Of a stretch of DNA of 64,000 bases, positions 31,968 through 59,081 are shown piece by piece. Below the pieces are notes generated by a model, which made no database searches, was not told where the DNA came from, and saw only the letters and a program-made list of their open reading frames with translations. Source of the DNA: Pavona decussata (taxonomy: Eukaryota); contig CDRNST010000104.1 of assembly GCA_977016875.1 (NCBI GenBank), positions 1,488,001 to 1,552,000 on the forward strand. The letters run 5' to 3'. Every line of letters starts with the position of its first letter. Position 1 is the first letter of the stretch. The translations under genes were made by a program, and so were the position numbers.

Positions 31968-34950
31968 TCTGTGTTGTTTTTGAAGAAACCACAAACCTTT
32001 GCCAACCTTCAACAAGAAAATGGCGGGAACTGCGCGCAAAACCTCGTATACGTGAAGTGCCAACTCCATATACGGTAAGATCTAGAACCCATTCTTCCTC
32101 TGTTGGAGAACATTGGCGGGAAGTTTCAATCGGGGAAATCATAATTTAGTTCTTCTTCTAACTTCATGATGCTTGGAACAAAAAGACAACGTCTTTCGGA
32201 CGAATTCTGGTCTAGAAAGGACATCGTTACTTGTCGCTGCTCCAGCTTACCATATAAGCATGTTCATTGCCCCTGTAGTGAGTGCACTTTTTCTGCTGTA
32301 TCGACTTCAACGGAATACACGCATTGGAAAAGAGCTGAAGCTCTCTCCATGAGGTAAGATATAAAGCTTAAGTTAGATTTACATTTCTGTTCATGATGAC
32401 TAATTACATAGGGAAAGTTACTAACAATTTATTTATTTTGGCTTTCCTTCATAAATTATTTCTCTCCAACCCCCTTGAACGGTTATTAAATCTCTAATAT
32501 GAGAATACTGTTTCAAACACAGCATTGAAAGCTCCTCATGTCAACTCAACTCACCTGATCCTACAACTTCCTCTTGCAATAATGAATTATTGAGTGCCGA
32601 GCAAGATAATTCAGAGGATTCAGACTCGGATTCAGGGGACTTTTCAACCCATGAAGCAAGAACCAGTGACTTTGATTGTGATTCTGATACTGGTCCCAGT
32701 AGTGTTAACTCAGTAAACATGGAGATAAGCTGTGCGATACTCAAGGCATTAAACTTGGTTGACCAAATGCAAGGTTCAGTGACAGACTTTGAAGACGTCC
32801 TACGTTTTTCAAAAGAACTGTTTTGTCGAAATGATGATGAACTTAAGAAACTTTGGCCTAAAGACTGGAGAGAGACAGCGGCTCTTTTACGGAAATGTGG
32901 CTATAAAGACCCAAAAGAATTATACATCTGTCTTGATGAAAGTCACTACTGTCACTGGGATGTCATGGAGAGCCCTACAGCAGTGTGCAAGTATTGTGGA
33001 AAGCAAGGCACTATCAAGCACTACTATTTAAGTATCAGCTATAAAATACAACAATGGTGTGCCAATGAAGCAATGTGCACTAAAATGATGGCGCACTGGG
33101 AAGACAAGGGACATTGGATACGAGGAGAGGGAGCTAATTTTACACTGAAAGAGGTATGGGATGGTTCACGATTCAATGAACTGAACTGGTTCTGGAACCC
33201 CGAATCCAATTGGATGCTCCCAGTGAAGTGCACATTCTGTAAAACTGTGATTAGTGTGGATGAGATATTAGCTTTTCCTGAGAAGGATGGCAAGCATGTT
33301 ATCACCTGTGATGAATGTGGTACCCAGTGGATACATGCACCCATCTTCACAACAGGGGATCCCCGAAACATAGCCTTGATTGGTCATTGGGATGGCTGGC
33401 AGCCATTTGGTTACCCAGGAAGTCATAGTTGTGGTAAGTTTTACAGACAAGTATTTTTCTTCATTGTGCAAAAAAATGTTTATTTCTATTAATTTTCTGT
33501 ACTCTTCATTTAATTGCTCATAAATTGTTCATGAGTTATATGAATAATTATTGATGTAAATTACTTTTCACTAATTAAAATAGGAAGATCTAATTATGTT
33601 GTTGCACTTGTACATTTAGGTGCTATTGAGGTAACAATTGCAAATATGTCAAAGGCTGTAAGGAGCAGTACAGATGAGATTTATGTGGTTGGATTTGTAC
33701 CATCCTATCAATTACCAAAGTCACGACCTTGTACACTTGACCCATTCCTTCACCCTTTAATCAGTGATGTCGAGGACATTTTCATTGAAGGTAACTTTCA
33801 AAGAGTATCTATTACATTGAATGTAAACAGCACATGTTAGTATGATTAATGTATGTTGGTCATTATTGTTTTCATACCATCTGCATGTCAAATAAATTTA
33901 AATGACCAATATTCAGATGTATTTATTAACTAGCAATTCTTATTTTATTTAAATGGAGTTCATTCTGAAATAATAATTTCATTTTACGAGGGTAGAACTT
34001 TCAGTTAAAATCGATAAACCTGTGGCTCTCCCTAGCTAGATTCCAATGTCTATGAAAGGAATACATGTCGAATATAGCATTACATGTACATGTAAAGTGG
34101 GTGACAATTTAACCATATGCTTGTAAAGAGAATAACAGGAGTTTATAGAAGTAACAATTGTAACATAATTCTCTTATTCACTGAAACTTTTAGGTCTAAG
34201 GGTCAACTATGCTAGACCATTTCCTTGTCTGCCAGCTGGTGAGTTGAATATCCGTGTGTTGATCCTTCTTTGGACAGGTGATTATCCTGCCCAGCATGAA
34301 GTGGGCAAGTTCATAAAACATGGGATATTTCCATGCCGGCGGGATAAATTAAGGTGGCCGAACACAGTTTTTAGACGCCTGAACCTTATTTGCTGTTATT
34401 TTCATGCTGTTGATACTTGGGAGCCATAAATTGGAGAGTGATAAGTTTAGTCATACATATTTTTATTTTTTGCATTTTGGCCCTGCTACATGACGTTGCC
34501 ATGGTAACAGTGCTGGTTAAAAACGTAGCTAAAGACAATATTTTCGTTTGTTTATAGAAAATTCAGTCGTTAGATTTTTTTCACAAATAGCATGCAGTGA
34601 ACTCCCAAAAAATCCTTGACCTCTATAGGTGTTTAACAACATTTTAACAGACTGATTTTCTACAATTCTCTGTTTACCTTTTTCACGACAAATTTTGGAT
34701 TCTTTTGAATTTCCTCTGTTAAACTTTAATTTTTTTACGACGGGGCGCTTGCATTTTTGCTGAATTATTTTCTTGCCAAGTTTAATGAAATTCTAACGAC
34801 TGGTTCGTGAGAAATCGGCGTGTTTCCGATGTGACAATCACAAAATTTTCGGTCTCAATTTTTCAATGAATTGCGCATGCGCAACATTTAACTGGCTTTC
34901 TTGATTCCTCAGTTCGATTCTTCGAGCGGGGTCACAACAGTAATACTTCT

Positions 34951-37900
34951 TTAGTGCAGTCTTCCTTTGAAATGGCTTACGATGCGATGAAGGACAACTG
35001 GATCAGTAGTGCCACGAGGAGTGCGACGAGTGGGCAAGTTGCCTGATGATGTTGCTGGATTGGCCAGGATTGCAAGGAGGCCTTGTTCGCCATGTTTGTC
35101 AAACACGTGTTGAAGGTGTTTGTAGCCGATGCCAGAGTCAGCCAGTTTCTTCGCTAATCCATTTTTGATAATGCCAGTGTTACGGGAATTGCAGAGGGTT
35201 CCTTGGAAGGATTGTTGGAGAGAATAACTGTGGTCAAGATAGAGCATTTGTTCTACTGCTGATTCGAGCTTCGTTGTCTGGCTGTTGTTTACAATATCGC
35301 ACACGGAGGCGCCAAGAGGACAGTTTAGAAGAATTTTGTGCAACGCTTTAACATCTTCAAGAGCATCATGGCCTTCGAAGTCCTCATTAAATAAAATTCT
35401 GTATATAGCAGCTTGGTTTGGTTTCACAAATGACCCGTCTTCGGTTTTTAGCGCTTCGCATTTCTCTCGGATGAGCTTGCGAACGAAGGCAAGGCTGTCA
35501 GCAAAATGGACGTTCAGTGCCTTCATTTCAGGGATTAGATGTGGCGAATAGCGCAGCACAGCTCTCAGAAACACGGGAGTGTCGAATGAACAGGAATTGT
35601 GGCCGATCAGGATGACTGTTGTATCATTTGTCTGGTCTTTAGACTCCGCTATAAAATTAACAAACGACTCAAGACATTCGGCTTGTGAAACGGTCTCCAA
35701 GTGGATTCCACCACGGTGAAGAATTTTCTTGCCGCCGATTGTGGTTAGTTGAAATTTATTTATCCTGGACGCATGAAAAGAAATGTCTTTCGTTGGCAGA
35801 ACAAACCTTGAAAATGTTTGACCCAGTTCATTCTGTGCTGCTAATTGGATAATCTCGGCTTCTTTTCCTCCACAAGTTGTTTCAGTGTCAAATGAAATTA
35901 TAGCCAAATTTGTGCTTGGATGATCTGCATAGGAAGTGAAGATTTTTTTGGGTGGTCGCTTAGTAAAAGTAGGGACCTCTTTCTCGAACTGTTTTAATCG
36001 TTCCTTTGTGACACCAGTGGCTTGTTCAACGAGCTGGGGGTCAAGTGTTAGTGACACCCCACTTTGGTAAGTAACTCCTTCTTTGTTTTGATCGGATTGA
36101 TTTCTGGCTTTCTTTTTTATGAAATTCTCTCTTCGTCGTTTCTTGAATTCAACCGAGGACTTTCTTCTTTTTTCAGCTTCCCTTTCTTTGTCCATTGCTG
36201 AAATGTTTGTCTCCATAATATTTCCTGGTTCTACATCTAGACAGCGTAGGGTATCTAGTAAATATTGTTTCCCCAAGTTTGTTTGTGCAACACCAGAAAC
36301 CCTTTGGTCAGAACTTTCGCTCCCACCATAAAAGCGGATTTTGGGCGCTTTTGAACCAACAGTACTGTGCCAGCTCTCATTAACTTGCGAAGAAGCATTT
36401 GCGACCAGTTTGTTAACTACAAGGTCACTTGCATATATCTCGAACAAATCAGTTAACACTGTTCTTAAATTTTCACCCTGGAGATCTTTTCCATTTGGTA
36501 AATCTTTGTGATGATATTCCTCAGGATTCTTAGCATGGCCACACCAATTAAGTTTGTGCATCTGGTCGCCAAATGCATGAGGAACAATGGCTTTCATTGT
36601 CACTTTCAACCTTTCTGCTTCTCCCTTGTTTTGACTAAGACAGTAGCTAAAACACTTGCGAAAGTAGTCAATGACCTTCTGGGAAAGAGGTGATTCTCCT
36701 GGTTGTTTTTTTCTTTCAGAACTGATCTTTTGTAAATGCCCTACAACTGTCCTTGTTGCATGGCTTGTGTCAGACCACTTATCCACTTTACAGTGTACTT
36801 CTTCACGAATTTTTGCAATTGTTGCACTGTCGTCATCACCGATAAACACTGAGTACTTAACTCCATGTTTGGGTGCATGATTAAAAAGCTGCACAGCCAC
36901 AGCTGCTTCCATGGCTTTTGAAGAGCCTGACTGGTTCATTCGACAATCATGCGAAACAGGTTGCTTGCCTTTTGAATTGGCTGCTGTGCAGACTCTACAA
37001 AACTTATTTGCGCACCCATAGTCAAGAATTTTCTTGGTTTCAATCCCTATAATGGCCCCATGTCCAGTTAATGAATTGTTTGCCCTGCCCCTTTTTAGCC
37101 ACTGCATGTCATATGATACCGACAATGGCATAAGGCCATCGGTATCAGGAATTTTGCCATTTTCCTCTGCAGCATTGCTTTCATCCTGTAAAACCATTTC
37201 ACAGGAGTTTGAAGCAACTTCTTCAATGGCCCTCCCAACTTCCCTCTCCCTCTTTTTGTAGGCACTTTTGTTCAGCGTTGGCACATTTAGCGTTGTCAGA
37301 AAATTGTTCATGTGGGTAAAACCGATACCATTGTCAATGGCACCATGTGCAATTCTGGTGTTGACATCATATGCTTTTGGGCCTCGCTTCCCATGTCGGT
37401 GTTGCTCACATGTAACTACTTTATTTTGTGTCCCACAATCTTCACATACAATCGATATAATGCTTGCACTTCCTTCTTTTATTTCCTTCACAGCATTCGA
37501 GAGAGAAAGAGGTCCTAAAAGTTAAAACATATTGCGTATAAATTTTATGTTCAAGAGACAAGAACATTAACTCCAGTGAGTCTTCCAAACAAGTGACATG
37601 TTGTTCTTGCAAACTTGAAATTGATACATGTGTACCTTTGAGTTAATTTATGATTTCATTTGTTTATTTTCTTTGCTAGTTTTGTGTTGTTTTCTGTTTA
37701 TGAAATTATTGTACTTTTGTTTATTAGAAAGCATTTCTGTTTAGGAAATCTGGCAAATCTGCAAATGTTTGCAAATGCAATTTGGTGATAAGCATGTTTA
37801 TGTTCATTTTTATAAATATGAAATGATTTCTCCACGGAATAGTAAACTATAATCAGTTTTTAGCAGTTCCTTTTCACAATAGGAACTTGAAAAAATTAAC

Positions 37901-49359: not shown

Positions 49360-52300
49360 TCTTCCTCCAGCAGGTTCAACCTTGGCGGGCAGGTCGAAGG
49401 GTAGAGGCCAGACTAAAGGGTAGTCACTGGTCCTCCAGGTTGGGGGTTGGGCGTGCGGCTAATCCCCGCACCTTATAAAAAATGTCCGATTACGGAAACC
49501 GAAAAGAAGATTGACGAACTCATCCGGGGGTGTCGTCGGGCGACGTGTGAGCTACCCGATGATGGCTTCCTGAGCTGGAATTCTGGTATCGCATGTATGA
49601 CAGATGTGGGGCAAAGCCGCAAGGACCCCCGCAACATGATTAAGTCGCCTGGGACATCCCTTCTGACACCCAAAACTACCCTGAGACTTGGGTGTTGGAA
49701 TGTACGAACACTGTACCAAATAGGAAAAACTGCCAATGTCACAAAGGAATTCAGGACCTACAATCTGGACATACTTGGTCTAAGCGAAGTTCGTTGGACT
49801 GGCTTTGGAGAACTGAAAACAGCAACGGGTGAGAGCATCTTGTACTCGGGAGCAGAAGAGGTGCATCATAGAGGAGTAGGACTCATTCTGAAGAAGGATG
49901 TAAGAAGAACGCTGGTGAAGTGGAACCCTGTCAACGAGAGAATCATGAGCGCACGCTTCAACTCGCGCTTTGCAAAACTCACTGTCATCCAAGTTTACGC
50001 GCCTACCAATGATGCCGAAGAAGAATCTAAGGAAGAATTCTATGACCTGCTGCAGCGGGAGGTAGAAGCAACACCCAGACATGATGTACTGATTATAATG
50101 GGAGACCTGAACGCCAAAATTGGAGGGGACAATGAAGGATGGGAGAAGGTGATGGGTCAACATGGACTTGGAACAATGAACGAGAATGGAGAGAGGTTGG
50201 CAACTTTCTGTGGCAACAATGACTTGGTGATTGGAGGCTCTCTATTCAAGCATAGAGACATTCATAAGATCACATGGACCTCCCCAAATGCAAGAGATCA
50301 GAATCAAATCGACCATATCATCATCAATGGTAGGTACAGAGGTTCGCTGATGGATACCCGAGCAATGAGAGGGGCTGATGCCAACTCGGACCATCACATG
50401 GTGGTGGGAAAGGTTAGGCTAAAGCTATGCAGCACAAAGAAGAAGAGCAAGGAAAGGATCATCTTCGACACCACAAAGCTTCGAGATCCCTGTGTTAAAG
50501 AGGTATTTCGCCTGGAAATAAGCAACCGATTCCAGGTGTTGGCAGCAGATGACATAGAAGATATTGAGGAGAGGTGGGGGCAATTCAAGAAGGTCTACAA
50601 CGAAAGTGCCAGGAAGGTGGTGGGTGAGAAGAGGAGAGTGAAGAATGACTGGATAAGTGGAGAGACCTACAGGAAAATTGAAGAGCGACGACGATTAAAG
50701 GAAAAGATAGGAAGTACAGGGTCTGCCCGCCTAAAGGAAAGAGCTACTACTGCTTATGCAGTGAAGGATAAAGAGGTGAAGGCCAGCGCCCGTGCAGACA
50801 AGCGGAGAAGGCTTAACAACTTAGCAGAAGAAGCTGAAATAGCAGCCAGAAACAACTGCAGCGGTGACCTGTACCAGCTTACTAGAAAGATAGCTGGACA
50901 AGGAAGGAACATGACTACCATCAAAGATAGGGAGGGTAAGCGACTTGTAAATGAAGATGAAGTCTTAGAGCGGTGGAGGGAGCACTTTGAGGGAGTTCTG
51001 AATGTACCACGGCCCGATATACCACTGCCAGAAATGGGCCAAGCACCTGAAGTCATCACAAGCATAGACACTGGAGACATATCAGTTGCTGAGATCAGGA
51101 GAGCTATCCATCGTTTGAAGAATGGCAAGAGTCCGGGAATGGATGCCATCAGTGCTGAGATGCTCAAGTGCTCTGAGAATGATGCTGTGAAACAACTCCA
51201 CTTACTTTTCAACTCCATCTGGAAAGAACAACGTGTACCAGAAGACTGGAAGAAGTCACTCATAGTGAAAGTGCCGAAGAAAGGGGATCTCACTCAGTGT
51301 GATAACTATCGCGGCATATCCTTACTCTCCGTACCAAGTAAAATCTTGTGCAGGATCCTCATTGACAGGGTAAAGAGTGGTGTGGACGAAATGATTAGAC
51401 AGGAACAGGCAGGATTTCGATCTGGAAGGGGAACCTCTGAGCAGATCTTTGCTTTGCGGAACATCCTAGAGCAGTGCCAGGAATGGCAAGCACCCCTGTA
51501 CATTAACTTTGTTGACTTTTCAAAGGCATTTGATTGCATCATCAGAGAGCGACTTTGGGACATTATGGGACAGTATGGCATACTTGACATCTTTATCAGG
51601 ACTTTCAAGGCACTTTACCATCAGAGCTCAAGCTGTGTTATAGAAGGCGGAAGGTACTCCAGCTGGTTTGAAGTGAAGAGTGGCGTGCGACAAGGGTGTG
51701 TGATGTCTGGCTTCATCTTTGTCCTGATCATGGACTGGGTCATGCGGCACACAAACGATAGAAGACGCGGCTTGAGATGGAAGTTTACATCGGTTCTAGA
51801 AGACCTGGACTATGCTGATGATGTTGCTCTTCTCTCAAGCAGATTTGGTGATCTACAGGATAAGACTGACAGGCTAGTAGACATTGCTGGTATTGTGGGA
51901 CTCAAGATCAACCCACACAAAACAAAGACGCTTAGAATGAACCACAAATGCACAGACAACATCAAGGTAGAAGGAGAGGGTGTAGACGACGTGAAATCCT
52001 TTGTATACCTAGGATCGGTGCTAGACAAACATGGTGGCACACAGGCAGACATCAAGAGGCGACTAGCAGTAGCCAGAAATGCATTTACCAGACTACAGAG
52101 CATCTGGAGGTCACAGAGATTCAGCAACAAGACCAAGCTGCGTATCCTGAACTCCAATGTGCTGTCTGTGTTACTGTATGGGGCCGCTATGTGGAGAATA
52201 ACGACAGTTGATCTCAACAAACTTGATGTATTCCACCGCACATGCCTAAGAAGAGTATTAAGGAGATTTTGGCCCTACCATCTGAGCAACGAAGAGCTAT

Positions 52301-52608
52301 ATGAAGCATCAGGGAGCATGCCAGTGTCCACCCTCATACAAGTGAGAAGGTGGCGTTGGATAGGCCACATCTTGAGGAAAAGTCCTAACGACATCTCAAG
52401 GACTGCACTAACGTGGGCACCCGAAGGTAAGAGGAAGCGAGGCCGGCCAAGGGAAACGTGGAGACGAACTGTGGAGAAAGAAAGGAATCAGCTGGGTTGG
52501 CAGTCATGGGAGGCTGCTGTCGCCTCGGCGGCAGACCGGGATGGGTGGCGCAATCTTCTCGCCGGCCTTAAGAGTCCACGTGGGCCCAAAGAGGATAAGT
52601 AAGTAAGT
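49360..52608 (+). mobile_element. RTE-clade LINE, near full length
   Basis: 7-bp TSD ATAGAGA at 49353-49359 and 52609-52615. (TAAG)n tail and a single ORF. Confidence 0.93.
49447..52602 (+). CDS. APE endonuclease + reverse transcriptase (true start probably ATG ~49598)
   Basis: WNVRTL, LSEVRW, GDLNAK, NQIDH, SDH (APE); FVDFSKAFD, GVRQG, LDYADD, YLGS (RT). The ORF is uninterrupted. Confidence 0.95.
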   Translation: MGVRLIPAPYKKCPITETEKKIDELIRGCRRATCELPDDGFLSWNSGIACMTDVGQSRKDPRNMIKSPGTSLLTPKTTLRLGCWNVRTLYQIGKTANVTKEFRTYNLDILGLSEVRWTGFGELKTATGESILYSGAEEVHHRGVGLILKKDVRRTLVKWNPVNERIMSARFNSRFAKLTVIQVYAPTNDAEEESKEEFYDLLQREVEATPRHDVLIIMGDLNAKIGGDNEGWEKVMGQHGLGTMNENGERLATFCGNNDLVIGGSLFKHRDIHKITWTSPNARDQNQIDHIIINGRYRGSLMDTRAMRGADANSDHHMVVGKVRLKLCSTKKKSKERIIFDTTKLRDPCVKEVFRLEISNRFQVLAADDIEDIEERWGQFKKVYNESARKVVGEKRRVKNDWISGETYRKIEERRRLKEKIGSTGSARLKERATTAYAVKDKEVKASARADKRRRLNNLAEEAEIAARNNCSGDLYQLTRKIAGQGRNMTTIKDREGKRLVNEDEVLERWREHFEGVLNVPRPDIPLPEMGQAPEVITSIDTGDISVAEIRRAIHRLKNGKSPGMDAISAEMLKCSENDAVKQLHLLFNSIWKEQRVPEDWKKSLIVKVPKKGDLTQCDNYRGISLLSVPSKILCRILIDRVKSGVDEMIRQEQAGFRSGRGTSEQIFALRNILEQCQEWQAPLYINFVDFSKAFDCIIRERLWDIMGQYGILDIFIRTFKALYHQSSSCVIEGGRYSSWFEVKSGVRQGCVMSGFIFVLIMDWVMRHTNDRRRGLRWKFTSVLEDLDYADDVALLSSRFGDLQDKTDRLVDIAGIVGLKINPHKTKTLRMNHKCTDNIKVEGEGVDDVKSFVYLGSVLDKHGGTQADIKRRLAVARNAFTRLQSIWRSQRFSNKTKLRILNSNVLSVLLYGAAMWRITTVDLNKLDVFHRTCLRRVLRRFWPYHLSNEELYEASGSMPVSTLIQVRRWRWIGHILRKSPNDISRTALTWAPEGKRKRGRPRETWRRTVEKERNQLGWQSWEAAVASAADRDGWRNLLAGLKSPRGPKEDK

Positions 52609-54215
52609 ATAGAGAGCAAGATTACTGAATGCTGATTGGTCGAAACAGAGGGCATTTTTCTTAATGTAATTTTTTCAAAATTACTCACTCCTTATTGGTC
52701 GAGCGGCGAAAATACTTCCTCCTGATTGGCTGAGCGCACCATGCATCTTGTTGGTTTCTTCACTGATTTGTTCCTGGACAATGACTTCTTTCGGGTTCTT
52801 TGTAGTTTGGAGTTTGTGCCAAGAATACTTGGAAATCAAGTGCTACAGCTACAAAGGAAACTCCTAAAGGTGAACTTTCGTTTCTTACAAGAAGCAGCAA
52901 GAGATTATTTGTGTCAAAAGCTAAAAACGTGATCGGATTTGTTTGGTTGGAAAACTGAAAACATTCATGGCCGCTACCAAGTGTTTTCACTTCGCTATGG
53001 CTTCTTCCAATGAACGATAACCGAAGAATAATATTGCCCTTTTGATGGGAGGAAGGAGCAGTTTAAATTCGTGAACGAAATTACTCTGCATGTTCCTTCT
53101 TTGGACCCATGGTTTGCTATTTTTATCGATCTGTAATCTTGTGATTTTCAAGTGGTAGAAAGATTCACAGTGAAGGTGAATCAAAATTATTGATGCCTTA
53201 CATTTGGTTTAATTGTTGTAAGGGTTCTCATGAATTAAACTTGTATTTTCTCTTAATTACATATATAGAACAATCAACTTTTCTCGTTTTGTCTGTTTTG
53301 TACGCTAATACAGTCGAACCTGTATATAACGGCCCTGTATTAAGCGGTCACCCTCTATTAAGCGGCCAGTTTATAAAGTCCCGATTTTTCGCGCATATAA
53401 ACGCTGTATTTGTTACCTGTATTAGGCGGCCACCTCAATTAAGCGGCCGCGGCCGCGGCCACCCTGTAGCAGTCCCATGTTTGTCTTTCTTTGTTATTAT
53501 TACCTGTATTAAGCGGCCACCCTTGAATGGAAAAGCCATATGCACAGTACCATGGATAACAGGAATTGTCGCTGGGAGTGCCGACAGTCAACGACTTGCT
53601 CTGCAAACAAAAGTTTCAAATTCCGAGGTGCCAAAGGAGTCGCTGTAATTCTTACCCTATTCCTATTTTAACTTAAAGAATTTTATTATATATTGTGTTA
53701 CTTTTAATTAGCAACGTTACCGTTATAACTCCACTTCGATCGTAACAACTATGAAATGACGGAATGAGATATTTTGTTGTGAACTGCAAGTCACATAAGT
53801 AAGTGAGTTAGAAATACAGTACTGTACACCGTACAAGAGTAGAGGACAATTTATTGCACAGTGCTTTTACACAGTGTTACGTATATGATACCTTTAAGTT
53901 ACAAGTTGGCACTGAACTTTCTTTAAAGTATTGATCTCTTGAAAGAGTGTTGATTGTCCTATTGTTTCCTCGCATGAAATGTTTTTGTATGATACACCAT
54001 TAACATTGACATTAGACAACGCCCAGTGAGTATTTTTAGTGATCCTGTATTAAGCGGCCACCTGTATTAAGCGGCCAGTTCCTTAAGTCCCGAGGGTGGC
54101 CGTTATATACAGGTTCGACTGTATTTTCAAAGTTTTTGCAAATTGCCCTGGTCACTGTGCGACTCAGGCAATTTGGGAAAACTTTGAAAATATGTGTTAA
54201 AATTAATCCTTAATT
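52609..54215. mobile_element. Non-autonomous element with terminal hairpin (Crypton-like), interrupted by a MITE
   Basis: Palindrome tattttcaaagtttt..caaattgcc / ggcaatttg..aaaactttgaaaata at 54122-54192, and ctgattgg motifs at the other end. Confidence 0.4.
53311..54121. mobile_element. pogo/Tigger-like MITE (811 bp)
   Basis: Perfect 24-bp TIR CAGTCGAACCTGTATATAACGGCC, TA TSD, and multiple internal cctgtattaagcggcc repeats. Confidence 0.92.
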
Positions 54216-55132
54216 TTTGTCGGCCAAAGCGCGATGAGCATCCTCCCCGCCCTGCATTTCATATGGGAGTTCCCCCTGGGTTTCCTGGTAGGGATAGAAC
54301 CTTGCATGCTGGCAAGAAATATTTTAGGATGATCAAACATATAAAGTACAGTAGAACGATACTAATCACAACTCTTTTTACAGCTCCTCCTTTTCATACT
54401 TTCTTTAGGGAATACAAATCAATGTTTTAGCTTTTTCGTCAAAAAAGTTTCATTAAACAGATGGTATTTGATTTCCACAGAGTACACACGTTGGGAATAT
54501 AATCATGCCATGCACAAATTTAATTAAGCATAATAACTTCGCTGTTCTAAGCACCGCTTGACGAAAAATATCGAAACTGGGCTCACAGTGATCAAAACAC
54601 CACGTTTGAGATCTCTTTTTAAAGCTCTCAAAAGACTCTTCGTTCATTGATGTAAATAACAGCTTAAAATATTTTGCAAAGAACTCAAAACCATCAAATG
54701 TCTGCAGTGATTCCACAGAGTTCCTAAGAATTGCAAGAACAAAGAAATATTCTCGCAACTTCGCGGCTCAAGGCTGCTTAATTAGGCTATTGTTCCTGTC
54801 TTTTGAATTCGCTTCAGTGTCTTCCTGCAAAGTTCTCACCTTTTCTCAACCGAGTAAAAACGAACTAATTTGCATCATTCTTCGCGGCTGCCGAAGTGAA
54901 TGCCCAAAGGAATAAAGAGAGCTTTCATGCAACAAAATCCAGCGGAGTCACTCATTTCTCAATGACACACTTAAATCGGCATGAAGTTGTAATGCGAGTA
55001 GGGCCAAATTACTTGAACAGAATACCCAAAATGTGACTGGGAGTTTTCAAAATGGCCAAACAGTGAAACAATTTGGCTGTAAAATGTTAACAAGATGTGC
55101 TAGGTCAAACGTTCTAACTTAAAACATTATAT

Positions 55133-57465
55133 TAAAGCATTGGTGTTCCCTCAACGGCAGAGACAAAAATCAGATCGACCTCCTGATGATCAGCGGCACG
55201 TGGAGGAGATCGCTGCAAGACGTTAGAGTGAGGAGAGGAGCAGATGTTGGCAGTGATCACCACCTTGTCACTGCAACTCTGAAAGTGAAACTGAGAAAGA
55301 ATGGACCTGAGAAACCAAGACAACAACAGTTTGATGTGGAGAAGCTGCGCAATGCCAAAGAAAAAAGCTAAAGAACAAGTTCCAAGCTTTGGCAGATGCT
55401 GAAAACTACACCCAGACAGAGTCAGCCGGAATCGACACCGCGTGGAAGCAAGTAAGATCAGCCTACACACAAACCAGTGAAGCTTCCCTAGGAAGAGGAC
55501 GAAAGAGGAGGAAAGAGTGGATAACAATGGATACCTGGAAAGCCATTGAGAACAGGAGAACCCTTAAGAAGAGAGTGTTGGAGACCAAGTCAGAAAGGCT
55601 GGAAGAGAGGTACAAACAACAGTACAGGGAAGCTGATCAAACAGTGAAAAGAATGGTTGGGGCCAACAAGCGGGCCTACATGGAAGGCCTTGCAAGGGAA
55701 GCAGAAGAGGCCGTGGCCAGAGGAGAACAAGGACGAGTGTACAAAATCACTAAGCTCGTCAGCGGGAAGTACCGGGGATCTACAGACACACCCATCGCAG
55801 ATAAACAGGGACAGATACTAACAACAGAAGCGGAACAAGAGGCGAGATGGGCAGAACATTTCAGCGAAGTTCTAAACAGACCACCACCAATCGCTCCAGC
55901 GGATGTACAGGACCCGGCTAAAGACCTGGATGTAAACATAACGCCACCTGAGAAACAAGAAATTGTGGCAGCCATCAGATCCCTCAAAAACGGAAAGGCC
56001 CCTGGTCAAGACAGCCTCAATGCAGAACTCTTCAAGGCAGACTCAGAGCTTGCAGCGCAAGTTCTTCAGCCACTCTTTACAGCCATCTGGGACGAGAAAC
56101 AACTACCAGAGGATTGGACGGAAGGCGTCATAGTAAAGATCCCGAAAAAGGGAGCCTTGAGCAATTGTAACAACTGGAGAGGAATCACCCTCCTGTCTGT
56201 TCCAAGCAAGATCCTCGCAAAAATCATCATCAAGCGAATTGAAGAGGCAGTGGACCAGCAACTCCGAAAGGAGCAGGCCGGTTTTCGACCAGGAAGAGGG
56301 TGCACAGACCAAATATTTACTCTGCGAAACATCATCAAACAGTGCACAGAATGGCAGAGACAGTTGTACATCAACTTCGTAGACTTTGAAAAGGCCTTTG
56401 ATAGCATCCATCGAGAGAGTCTATGGCGCATTCTCAGGGCATATGGAATACCGCAGGAGATTGTTCTTGTCATCAAGAGTTTCTACAACAACTTCACATG
56501 CAGGGTAGGAAGCAGCGAGACCAGCTTCAGCGTGAAGACCGGTGTTAGACAAGGCTGTTGTATGTCTGCGATGCTCTTCAACTTGACAATTGACTGGGGG
56601 ATGAGGCAGACAACAGCAGACCAAGTGCGAGGCATCAGATGGACCCTCTTGACACAACTTGAAGATTTGGACTTTGCTGACGATCTAGCACTCATGTCGC
56701 ATACCCACCAGCACATGCAGGAGAAGACGTCCCGTCTAAATACCTTTGCACGGCAAGTAGGCTTGAAGATCAGCCAGAAGAAGACGGAGGTAATGATGCT
56801 GAACATATCAAACCCATCACCTGTCACAGTAAATGGAGAAGATCTACCAACGTCCGAAGAATTTACATACCTTGGGAGCACTGTCAGACATGACGGTGGG
56901 GCAGGCAGCGACATCAAGAACCGCCTCAGTAAGGCCAGAAATGCGTTTAGAATGATGAACAACGTTTGGAAGTCATCCCAGTACAGCACCAAGACCAAAC
57001 TAAGACTGTACCAGAGCTGCGTAATCTCCACCCTACTGTACGGCTCGGAATGTTGGAGGATTACAGAGAGCGACCTCAACAAGCTGTCCACCTTCCACAC
57101 GAAAAACCTCAGAAGAATCCTACGTATATTCTGGCCTGAAACCATCTCCAACCAAGAACTTCTTGCTCGCTGCAACCAGGACAGCATGGGGACCATCATT
57201 ATGCGAAGACGATGGAAATGGATCGGACATGTCATGCCACGGGAGGAAGACAACATCACTCGCACAGCCCTTCACTGGACACCAGAGGGGAGACGCAGGC
57301 GAGGACGACCCAAGATCACCTGGCATCGGACTGTGGAAGCAGAACTGAAGACCTTACATCATACCTGGGGAACCATTCAGAGGCTAGCTAGGGACAGACA
57401 GGAGTGGCTTAATTTTGTTGCTGCCCTACATGCCAAGCCAGCATATGGGCATGAGTGAGTGAGTG
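55133..57465 (+). mobile_element. 5'-truncated RTE-clade LINE (second family)
   Basis: 7-bp TSD ATTATAT at 55126-55132 and 57466-57472. Starts in the APE C-terminus (NQID, SDH), with a frame break at ~55370. RT ORF 55389-57458 contains LDFADD. (GTGA)n tail. Confidence 0.92.
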
Positions 57466-57877
57466 ATTATATAGCCTCCTGATGTGGGAGGAAGGAATGG
57501 CAATAGGATATACAATCGTACTAGAGTCATCAATGTTAAATTGAACATTGTTTATTGTTTCTTCATAAGAACAATGCGTACCATTTATCCTTTGATGAAA
57601 CATATTCTTTGAATAGCAGAATAACATATTTGAAGTAAACACAGAGGTTTGAGATGGGTAAACACAACAGATAACGTATCAACGTTCTTGTTTTGTTCCA
57701 AAAAGTTTTGACAACGTAAAGGTCGTCTTGGACTGGCCAAAAAAAAAAAAAAAAAAAAACCCGATATATAACAGATTACTTGAAGGGCATCTTAAGAGAC
57801 CGAGAATAATAAACCATAAATGTTCAAGATAAAGAAACATTAACATTTTTGCTTTCACTCGTACTACTGTTGGGTAT

Positions 57878-59081
57878 TTATAACTCAAACGATGAGCGAG
57901 TTGTGGTCATAGGTAACAGTGATGTTAGCAAGGAACAGGAGGGCTTCACATACTGTGGAATCAGCAGCAGTTGGTAGATCTTCGACCACTTTCTGAAGTA
58001 CTTCATTGAACACTGTAAGGTACAAGCATCTTCCATCTTCTGGATTAACAACGATGGTTGCGTACCGGCGCTTTTCACAATCGCCACTTCTCATGAAATA
58101 GCCACATTTATCACAGTGGACAATGGCAGTTGCTGTTGGCTGTATGACTTTTCTGGAGCACTTAACCCATTCAAGGAAAACTTCAACTTTCTCAATAGAA
58201 TGGATCCTGGGAATATTGATAGTGGTAGCCTTATCTTTTTGATTGTGTTTTACTGCCACAGCCTGGATGTCATCTTTGCTATCAAGTGTAAAAACTGAAG
58301 TGAAGACTGTTGAAGAGTTTTTTCTTGCCCATCCAGTTACAAACCTGAACTGAGGTAACTAAAAACACTTGCCCTTTTTTCACAGTAGATATATTGTTTA
58401 ACCACAAGTCCAGGTCAATAGTTCCTGTGTTATCTGCTACTTTAGCGGTTGCGACTTCAATATTTCTATTGGGTAACGTGGACGGTGTTCCAATGCTCGT
58501 CACCTTAAGACCAGCATTTACAAAGTCACTAATATCTGCATTGGCGATTATATCCTGTACTGAAAGAGGTAGACTGGCCTATTTCAATAAATTGGTCATT
58601 GAATTGGAACATATAGACAGTTGGTTCGGGTACGGATATTTCTGTGATATCATTCACAATGAACTTTTTGGTATCAGATGTATAGCTACATCTTTTCAGT
58701 TTGATAGCTGTATGGGACTTCTCACTGTCGGCGAGAAGGGGCCTTTTGCTCTTGGAATAAAGTAGCCCTTCTTCGATGACTGATGCTGATGTTTGTAACC
58801 TTAACGTTGAATAGTCCATTGTGTCTCTTTTGTTTCTTTTGCTTGGAGAAAGTTGATGGTCATAACCGATGATGGTATCTGCTTTTCTAGGAGAAGTTTT
58901 GGTAGCTGTAGCTGCGTTTGTCGAACCTCGTTTATGAAAAGGGCTGTTAAAGCCAGATTGCACAAGTGGAGTGGTCACTTAAAGTTGGGTTTACTGTCCC
59001 TTCAACTTTCTGAAGTTTCTTGACAGCTTTGTTTTTGGTTGAGTCGTTGGGTATTGAAGCTTTTGCGCCGGGTGTAGGCAT
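57878..59081 (-). pseudogene. RPA70-like multi-OB-fold ssDNA-binding protein with Zn ribbon (Helitron/Helentron-type accessory gene)
   Basis: VADNTGTIDLDLW (OB-fold D-x-TG motif), CSRKV...VHCDKCG, LYLTVF. Intronless and frameshifted across four ORFs. Confidence 0.65.

Follow-up and report, generated by a model that had tools for sequence, protein, structure and literature searches.

A 64,000-nucleotide stretch of the genome of the coral Pavona decussata (contig CDRNST010000104.1, positions 1,488,001 to 1,552,000; hereafter the window) carries a 5,520-bp Kolobok DNA transposon on its minus strand (window 34353-39872). Inside this element, a single open frame of 846 codons (window 34951-37491, minus strand; the frame is open from 37521) joins a DDE transposase to a predicted DEDDh exonuclease and a C-terminal tail. 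An earlier reading of the bare letters (the original prediction) had claimed one open frame with a DDE triad, a basic linker, the DEDDh motifs and a helical tail; all of these lie where that reading had put them, and their Pfam matches are far beyond chance. We consider it very likely that the element, as it resides in the coral genome, is a copy of an autonomous-type Kolobok transposon belonging to the KolobokD lineage.

Three copies with 97-100% identity fix the boundaries of the element. A DNA search of the window's own 602-Mb Pavona decussata assembly returned two more full-length copies, 98% and 97% identical to the one in the window, and alignment of the 20-kb surroundings of the three copies with the window limited the common unit to about 5.5 kb. 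Both ends of this unit carry a perfect 19-bp terminal inverted repeat (TIR), starting 5'-GGTGGCC…, at window 34353-34371 and, at the element's 5' end, at 39854-39872 (both minus strand). The two are exact reverse complements of each other, and the resulting termini, 5'-GG…CC-3', fit the RR..YY pattern. TTAA flanks both sides in 3/3 copies, and in the window these target-site duplications (TSDs) occupy 34349-34352 on the 3' side and 39873-39876 on the 5' side (no strand assigned). In line with this arrangement, two paralogues of the host sequence on contigs C67 and C343, 99% identical, represent empty sites, in which the left and right flanks are contiguous across a single TTAA. The element was inserted at TTAA.

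The ends of the element are far more numerous than its full-length copies. When we searched the assembly for TTAA followed by the TIR, allowing up to 2 mismatches, we found 778 + 774 = 1,552 occurrences, compared to 0 for the reversed control. Between one sampled TIR pair, one of about 775 genome-wide, lies a 772-bp element resembling a miniature inverted-repeat transposable element (MITE; L027, G000:C36:3857104-3857875) that has the same TTAA and 19-bp TIR; only its ends of about 30 bp are in common with the window element, and its interior is unrelated. Together, the 1,552 sites and this end-sharing element point to hundreds of MITE-like derivatives of the family. The family has been recently mobile and is the source of hundreds of short non-autonomous elements.

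The Kolobok DDE transposase core occupies window 36217-37491 (minus strand). The Pfam profile PF20700 ('Mutator-like transposase') matches amino acids 2-312 of the frame at 3e-87, beginning at profile position 35. The catalytic motifs SYDMQW (37099-37116), IGDDDS (36826-36843) and NESWH (36367-36381), as well as a DxxH signature that reads D-T-S-H here (36760-36777), are kept in 7/7 aligned proteins, which span four subfamilies and comprise the window protein and six others drawn from two further subfamilies of this genome and from close database homologues. Downstream of the first catalytic aspartate lies a CCHC finger (C-x2-C…H-x-C, amino acids 165-183, window 36943-36999), whose first three ligands are present in all seven proteins and whose last cysteine is present in six (P0003 reads HDF at this position). 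A second Cys/His cluster, conserved across the alignment and matched to the published Kolobok finger by position only, survives as a remnant at window 36535-36582 (minus strand; PHAFGD..HKLNWCGH), where the window copy lacks the H-x-x-C.

The transposase core is followed by a Lys/Arg-rich linker (amino acids 434-464, window 36100-36192, minus strand), which resembles a nuclear-localisation signal (NLS). Next comes the DEDDh 3'-5' exonuclease (EXO) domain at window 35266-35913 (minus strand). The ExoI (D-x-E), ExoII (D) and ExoIII (H-x4-D) motifs are all present, as FDTETT (35875-35892), HNSCSFD (35581-35601) and HDALED (35353-35370), respectively. Pfam assigns Exu_RNase_H_like (6e-8) and RNase_T (PF00929, 3e-5; 25.2-27.6 bits against a cut-off of 24) to this part of the exon-3 frame, so called after the gene model described below. 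The last 70 residues of the same frame match PML_C at 1e-5, a match that scores 27.1 bits, exactly at the cut-off, when the domain is scanned alone; together with a weak match to SAM_Exu it marks a SAM-like C-terminal subdomain at window 34969-35175 (minus strand).

The fold supports these assignments. An AlphaFold2 model of amino acids 500-846 reached a pLDDT of 89 and a pTM of 0.86, and its C-terminal subdomain is helical. In structural comparisons, the model matched zebrafish Plex9.1 best (Z 24.1, root-mean-square deviation 1.8 Å over 184/185 residues), followed by Exuperantia (Exu; 5l80_A, Z 22.9 over 281 residues), TREX1 (Z 20.4) and TREX2 (Z 20.2). Because the Exu match covers the EXO and SAM parts alike (model residues 17-346), we assign the helical tail of about 130 amino acids to a SAM-like subdomain. 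Sequence searches of the PDB gave the same closest relatives: the Plex9-type exonucleases 9l8b (2.7e-11) and 9mrc (Plex9.1, 5e-10), then Exuperantia (7e-4), with TREX1/2 chains absent from the matches at E<=1. Plex9.1 and the coral nuclease can be aligned without a shift across the D-x-E, D and H-x4-D motifs. The fused open reading frames (ORFs) of this genome retain the five DEDDh residues, as do nearly all homologues in the databases; P0003 has A/I in its ExoI box. These data support the view that the nuclease is a complete, active-looking DEDDh enzyme of the Plex9/PML/Exu/TREX kind. The catalytic completeness claimed in the original prediction thereby gains a matching fold from the structural search. 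Its description of the enzyme as 'TREX1/PML-like' fares less evenly: the kinship with Plex9/PML-type proteins holds by sequence and by fold, and TREX1 is a structural cousin only, with no match at the level of sequence.

The fusion is not peculiar to the window copy. When the genome was searched at the protein level with the nuclease part, 104 matches came up, among them four more fused ORFs, uninterrupted over 862-895 amino acids, which represent three further subfamilies with about 56%, 39% and 33% identity in the EXO-SAM part. According to Pfam, transposase, EXO and PML_C are all present in these four. A fifth ORF (L025, 583 amino acids), from a subfamily at about 29% identity, holds the transposase C-terminus and EXO only and has no PML_C match. 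Between subfamilies, nonsynonymous divergence (dN) ranges from 0.22 to 0.79 and synonymous divergence (dS) is saturated; dN/dS is about 0.12-0.31 where it can be computed and, with dS saturated or undefined for most domains, we read it qualitatively. High dS combined with low dN/dS indicates that the nuclease and the tail, as parts of the transposase protein, have long been under purifying selection. In these sequence comparisons, at least four deeply diverged subfamilies of one genome have retained the fused architecture and all catalytic residues under purifying selection.

PF20700 is entered only at position 35, and the missing N-terminal portion of the protein is probably encoded upstream, where a putative gene model places about 212 residues on two further exons. 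In this model, exon 1 (window 39282-39794, minus strand; 171 codons) starts with an ATG at 39794 and ends at a donor GT at 39281-39280. Exon 2 (39062-39185, minus strand; 124 nt), recognized by comparison with other subfamilies, would encode the first, N-terminal part of the transposase domain (…GYRIVDLG…CQQCNS). Intron 2 (37515-39061, minus strand) would run from a donor GT at 39061-39060 to an acceptor AG at 37516-37515. Exon 3 (34951-37514, minus strand) would then encode the transposase core, linker, EXO and SAM-like tail up to the stop codon at 34953-34951. Exon 1 is 35% identical over 171 amino acids (E about 1e-20) to the upstream exon of L023/L024, the 56% subfamily, and exon 2 is 49% identical to its equivalent there, with both exons at matching relative positions. 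Joining exon 2, a split glycine codon and exon 3 yields …CQQCNS-G-PLSLSN…, which is colinear with the intronless L022/L025 of the same genome (…CQACKQGPLALTD…). We searched the exons singly, so that the three-exon arrangement derives from comparison only, and Pfam found no matches in exon 1 or exon 2 taken alone, exon 2 being too short for one. Taken together, these comparisons suggest one three-exon gene with a polypeptide of about 1,065 amino acids.

Some further features of the upstream region deserve mention. The exon 1 leader contains a hydrophobic stretch. Within putative intron 2, a 52-bp piece (37814-37865) and a 36-bp piece (38776-38811) turn up again, with differing flanks and at higher depth, in many contigs of the public runs that are otherwise unrelated, and look like fragments of another abundant repeat. 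On the other side of the coding frame, the 3' untranslated and subterminal region (34372-34950, minus strand) is common to the three copies and is not spanned by the X1, X2 and X6 contigs of the public runs.

Upon comparison with its sisters, the window copy turned out to be damaged within the second Cys/His cluster. A private in-frame deletion of 12 nt at about 36566 removes H-R-E-C, where both sisters read PHAFGDHRECQMHKLNWC, and a second private in-frame deletion, of 3 nt at 36298, is likewise seen against both sisters. The H-x-x-C is kept in 6/6 other aligned proteins, down to 33% identity in the nuclease part, and the PF20700 match ends at profile position 346/357, the deletion site, in the window copy and reaches 357 in the other subfamilies. 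Because the private deletion removes this conserved H-x-x-C, which is of the zinc-finger type, the window copy is probably not autonomous. 'Intact', as the original prediction had it, therefore applies to the open 846-codon frame; it does not extend to the N-terminus, which lies on the putative upstream exons, nor to the deleted cluster. The sisters are interrupted in other ways: the C46 copy carries +1 and -7 indels, and the C15 copy carries a -4 indel and a 734-bp insertion, leaving open frames of 404 and 451 amino acids. The 734-bp insertion falls at the position of window 37938, inside putative intron 2. The X1, X2 and X6 contigs include the 3-nt insert, and their gap letters add up to 15 (12 + 3); therefore, a version with neither deletion exists in the sequenced samples.

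Several observations count against our reading of the element as an autonomous-type KolobokD transposon with a three-exon gene and an end-processing nuclease. Among the contigs of four public runs that mapped to the element we found no splice joint, and the X1, X2 and X6 contigs run unspliced from about 34905 to about 38165, across the proposed acceptor; three of the four runs are presumed to be RNA, and their contigs neither confirm nor refute splicing. The window copy is without H-R-E-C and one further codon, its sisters are frameshifted, and no fully wild-type copy of the subfamily was found in the assembly. Nuclease activity and a part in transposition are predictions from sequence and model. 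Finally, we assigned the lineage by published features, and the named KolobokD families of Repbase entered the comparison by their description.

The assignment itself draws on the features that Kojima and Bao describe for these elements (Mob DNA 2022;13:24, PMC9587614). They use 'KolobokD' for Kolobok lineages of cnidarians, molluscs and arthropods that encode a DEDDh exonuclease similar to Exu, TREX and ERI1, and they list a CCHC finger after the first D as a feature of KolobokD, KolobokE and KolobokP. Both the DEDDh (DnaQ-type) exonuclease, with complete ExoI, ExoII and ExoIII, and the CCHC finger downstream of the first catalytic D are present here, as are the TTAA duplications and RR..YY termini with TIRs that characterize the Kolobok superfamily. 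The original prediction had named Kolobok as the superfamily, and the TTAA duplications, the 5'-GG..CC-3' termini, the TIRs and the empty sites bear it out despite the Pfam label. It had also allowed that the element might match a named subgroup, which would remove any claim to novelty. This is what we find: the transposase-exonuclease design is already named KolobokD (PMC9587614), and the fusion itself is not new.

Two other identities for the element can be weighed against the Kolobok assignment. The Pfam name of PF20700, together with the strength of its match (3e-87), would suggest a Mutator-like element (MULE), and the C/DxxH signature fits as well, being common to Kolobok, MuDR, P and hAT (PMC9587614). 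We nevertheless consider a MULE highly improbable, in view of the RR..YY termini and of a CCHC finger that follows the first D, a feature of KolobokD, KolobokE and KolobokP. All three copies have a TSD of 4 bp, TTAA, in agreement with the empty sites; MULE TSDs are about 8-11 bp. 'Mutator-like' is only a label here, not a superfamily, because TTAA TSDs and RR..YY termini define Kolobok and the TSDs of MULEs are much longer. The long open frame, the conserved fusion and the contigs of probable RNA runs that lie over the ORF might instead speak for domestication, in which the coral would have recruited a transposase-exonuclease fusion as a host gene. To this we give next to no credence, given the perfect TIRs, the TSDs, the empty sites and the near-identical copies at unrelated loci, along with frameshifted sisters and hundreds of MITE-like relatives. 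We also considered piggyBac, which combines the same TTAA with a DDD transposase of its own type, and rejected it: the transposase matches PF20700, no piggyBac domain was matched, and the termini are GG..CC. TTAA TSDs combined with RR..YY termini separate Kolobok from piggyBac (PMC9587614).

With the element taken as KolobokD, the role of its nuclease can be considered. We propose that it would process DNA ends in cis, alongside the transposase to which it is joined, by trimming 3' nucleotides or flaps from the excised element or at donor and target gaps, and that the SAM-like part may help to bind nucleic acid. For KolobokD in general, the nuclease has been proposed to degrade DNA intermediates from the 3' end during transposition (PMC9587614). 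By contrast, the exonuclease may serve outside the chemistry of transposition, in counter-defence or competition, by degrading excised or cytosolic DNA that could trigger cGAS-STING-type sensing, or retroelement cDNA, as TREX1 and Plex9 do. The closest solved relative of the coral enzyme is indeed Plex9.1; Plex9 shares with TREX1 the ability to suppress LINE retrotransposition and complements a knockout of TREX1, and cGAS-STING is conserved in metazoans (PMC10123124). Yet in every subfamily transposase and nuclease are translated as one fused protein, with the nuclease behind the NLS-like linker, which fits action on the transposon's own DNA, and other Kolobok lineages carry end-processing or recombination enzymes: a lambda-exonuclease-like enzyme in KolobokE, RecQ in KolobokH and His-Me in KolobokP (PMC9587614). 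Because of this conserved fusion and these modules, we favor a role in end processing in cis and hold immune evasion or anti-retroelement action to be unlikely.

A second EXO-SAM lineage in the same genome bears on the kinship between the transposon nuclease and vertebrate proteins. Downstream of Kolobok transposase fragments, and on their strand, lies an EXO + SAM-like frame of 285 amino acids (L021:3876-4730; G000:C10:3733375-3734229). This frame matches the whole length of the Pfam PML_C profile at 2e-22. Its identity to teleost 'protein PML-like'/Plex9-type proteins is 40-42% (E 1e-25 to 1e-28), far above the 26-27% that it has with the nuclease of the window Kolobok. It also matches transposase-fused proteins of a coral and a wasp. 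The lineage recurs at L026 (C471) and on C186 and C93; the 99.5% identity between L021 and L026 extends across 8.2 kb and points to a large element, a segmental duplicate or a haplotig. An unrooted tree built from 41 EXO domains puts the fish clade, supported at 100/100, on the side of the L021 lineage and away from the clade of the window element; Kolobok-fused sequences occur on both sides, with support of 81-91 at the intervening nodes and no outgroup.

This distribution raises the question of where the vertebrate modules came from. Tentatively, and with somewhat less than even confidence, we suggest that the catalytically intact EXO-SAM module of KolobokD may have given rise to lineage-restricted host modules, namely PML exon 9 (PXL/CDE) and Plex9 in vertebrates and possibly arthropod Exuperantia, each through domestication or the capture of an exon; in which direction the transfer went is unproven. 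In the literature searched we found no link of Kolobok with PML or Plex9, nor a capture of EXO-SAM by either. A vertebrate gene has taken up a Kolobok-encoded domain before, however: P2X7 captured KolX, as Kojima and Bao describe. Taken with the sequence matches and the tree, this precedent from the same authors makes a transposon origin of PML exon 9 and Plex9 plausible, though unproven.

The neighborhood of the element holds further repeats. The host sequence around the Kolobok copy is itself a repeat, present in three copies at 99% identity (window 33646-34352 and from 39877 onward; G000:C67:3243290-3243941; C343:432564-433202), and the Kolobok insertion breaks one of its ORFs. We take these ORFs to resemble a CACTA/tnp2-type transposase; a Pfam scan of the flanking ORFs gave nothing informative. 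Elsewhere, window 50001-58000 differs from the remainder of the window by a GC content of up to 0.42-0.47 and a strong positive AT skew (about 0.19-0.21).

The element is thus a well-documented representative, from a coral, of a lineage that already has a name; it is useful for the annotation of transposable elements, and it belongs to a family that has been active recently enough for probing the nuclease's part in cut-and-paste transposition. Its wider value lies in the kinship of the transposon EXO-SAM with Plex9, PML-C and Exuperantia. A 2026 paper on PXL explicitly calls for an evolutionary analysis of EXO-SAM proteins (PMC13659232). Active-looking EXO-SAM modules are present in the Kolobok elements of this coral, similar fused proteins are found in a second coral and a wasp, and clusters of EXO + PML_C proteins are commonest in molluscs. 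Judged by sequence and model, the coral KolobokD nuclease would be closer to the vertebrate Plex9/PML module than any other known active relative. If true, the proposed descent would provide a concrete, testable origin for the PML C-terminal module and for the anti-retroelement nucleases of fish.

Compared with known systems, the element is most like KolobokD, with which it shares the TTAA TSD, the RR..YY termini, a DDE transposase with the CCHC finger after the first D, an Exu/TREX-like DEDDh (DnaQ-like) exonuclease and an occurrence in cnidarians. The published account of KolobokD comprises a single paragraph that mentions neither a SAM-like/PML_C tail nor a kinship with Plex9/PML, nor whether the nuclease is fused or separate (PMC9587614). 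Beyond that account, we document the fusion, a putative three-exon gene and MITE progeny, and show that a single coral contains at least four subfamilies. KolobokE, KolobokH and KolobokP share the habit of carrying a DNA-processing module but differ in the class of enzyme. TREX1 and TREX2 share the DEDDh fold (Z about 20 over 190-200 residues, 16-20% identity), but have no SAM-like domain and give no sequence-level PDB match to the coral nuclease. Exuperantia (PDB 5L80) and the PXL of human PML-1 share the two-subdomain EXO-SAM arrangement, reflected here in the Exu_RNase_H_like and PML_C matches; the 2026 PXL paper describes this arrangement only for these two proteins (PMC13659232). Both are pseudo-nucleases that bind RNA or other nucleic acid, whereas the catalytic DEDDh set of the coral protein is complete and conserved. 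The Plex9.1/PML C-terminal exonuclease (PDB 9MRC/9MRD; PMC10123124) comes closest, at 28% identity, with all five DEDDh residues identical and its beta-hairpin present in the model of the coral nuclease. Yet Plex9 is a stand-alone host gene of about 195 amino acids, found in fishes only and without a SAM-like tail, and in PML the module is joined to RING, B-box and coiled-coil domains. The coral module instead forms the C-terminus of a transposase in a mobile element: in place of a stand-alone syntenic gene or an RBCC/TRIM N-terminus, its N-terminal partner is a Kolobok transposase inside TIRs. From its sequence and modelled fold, the coral nuclease is predicted to work like the Plex9/PML family, but it is not a member of it.

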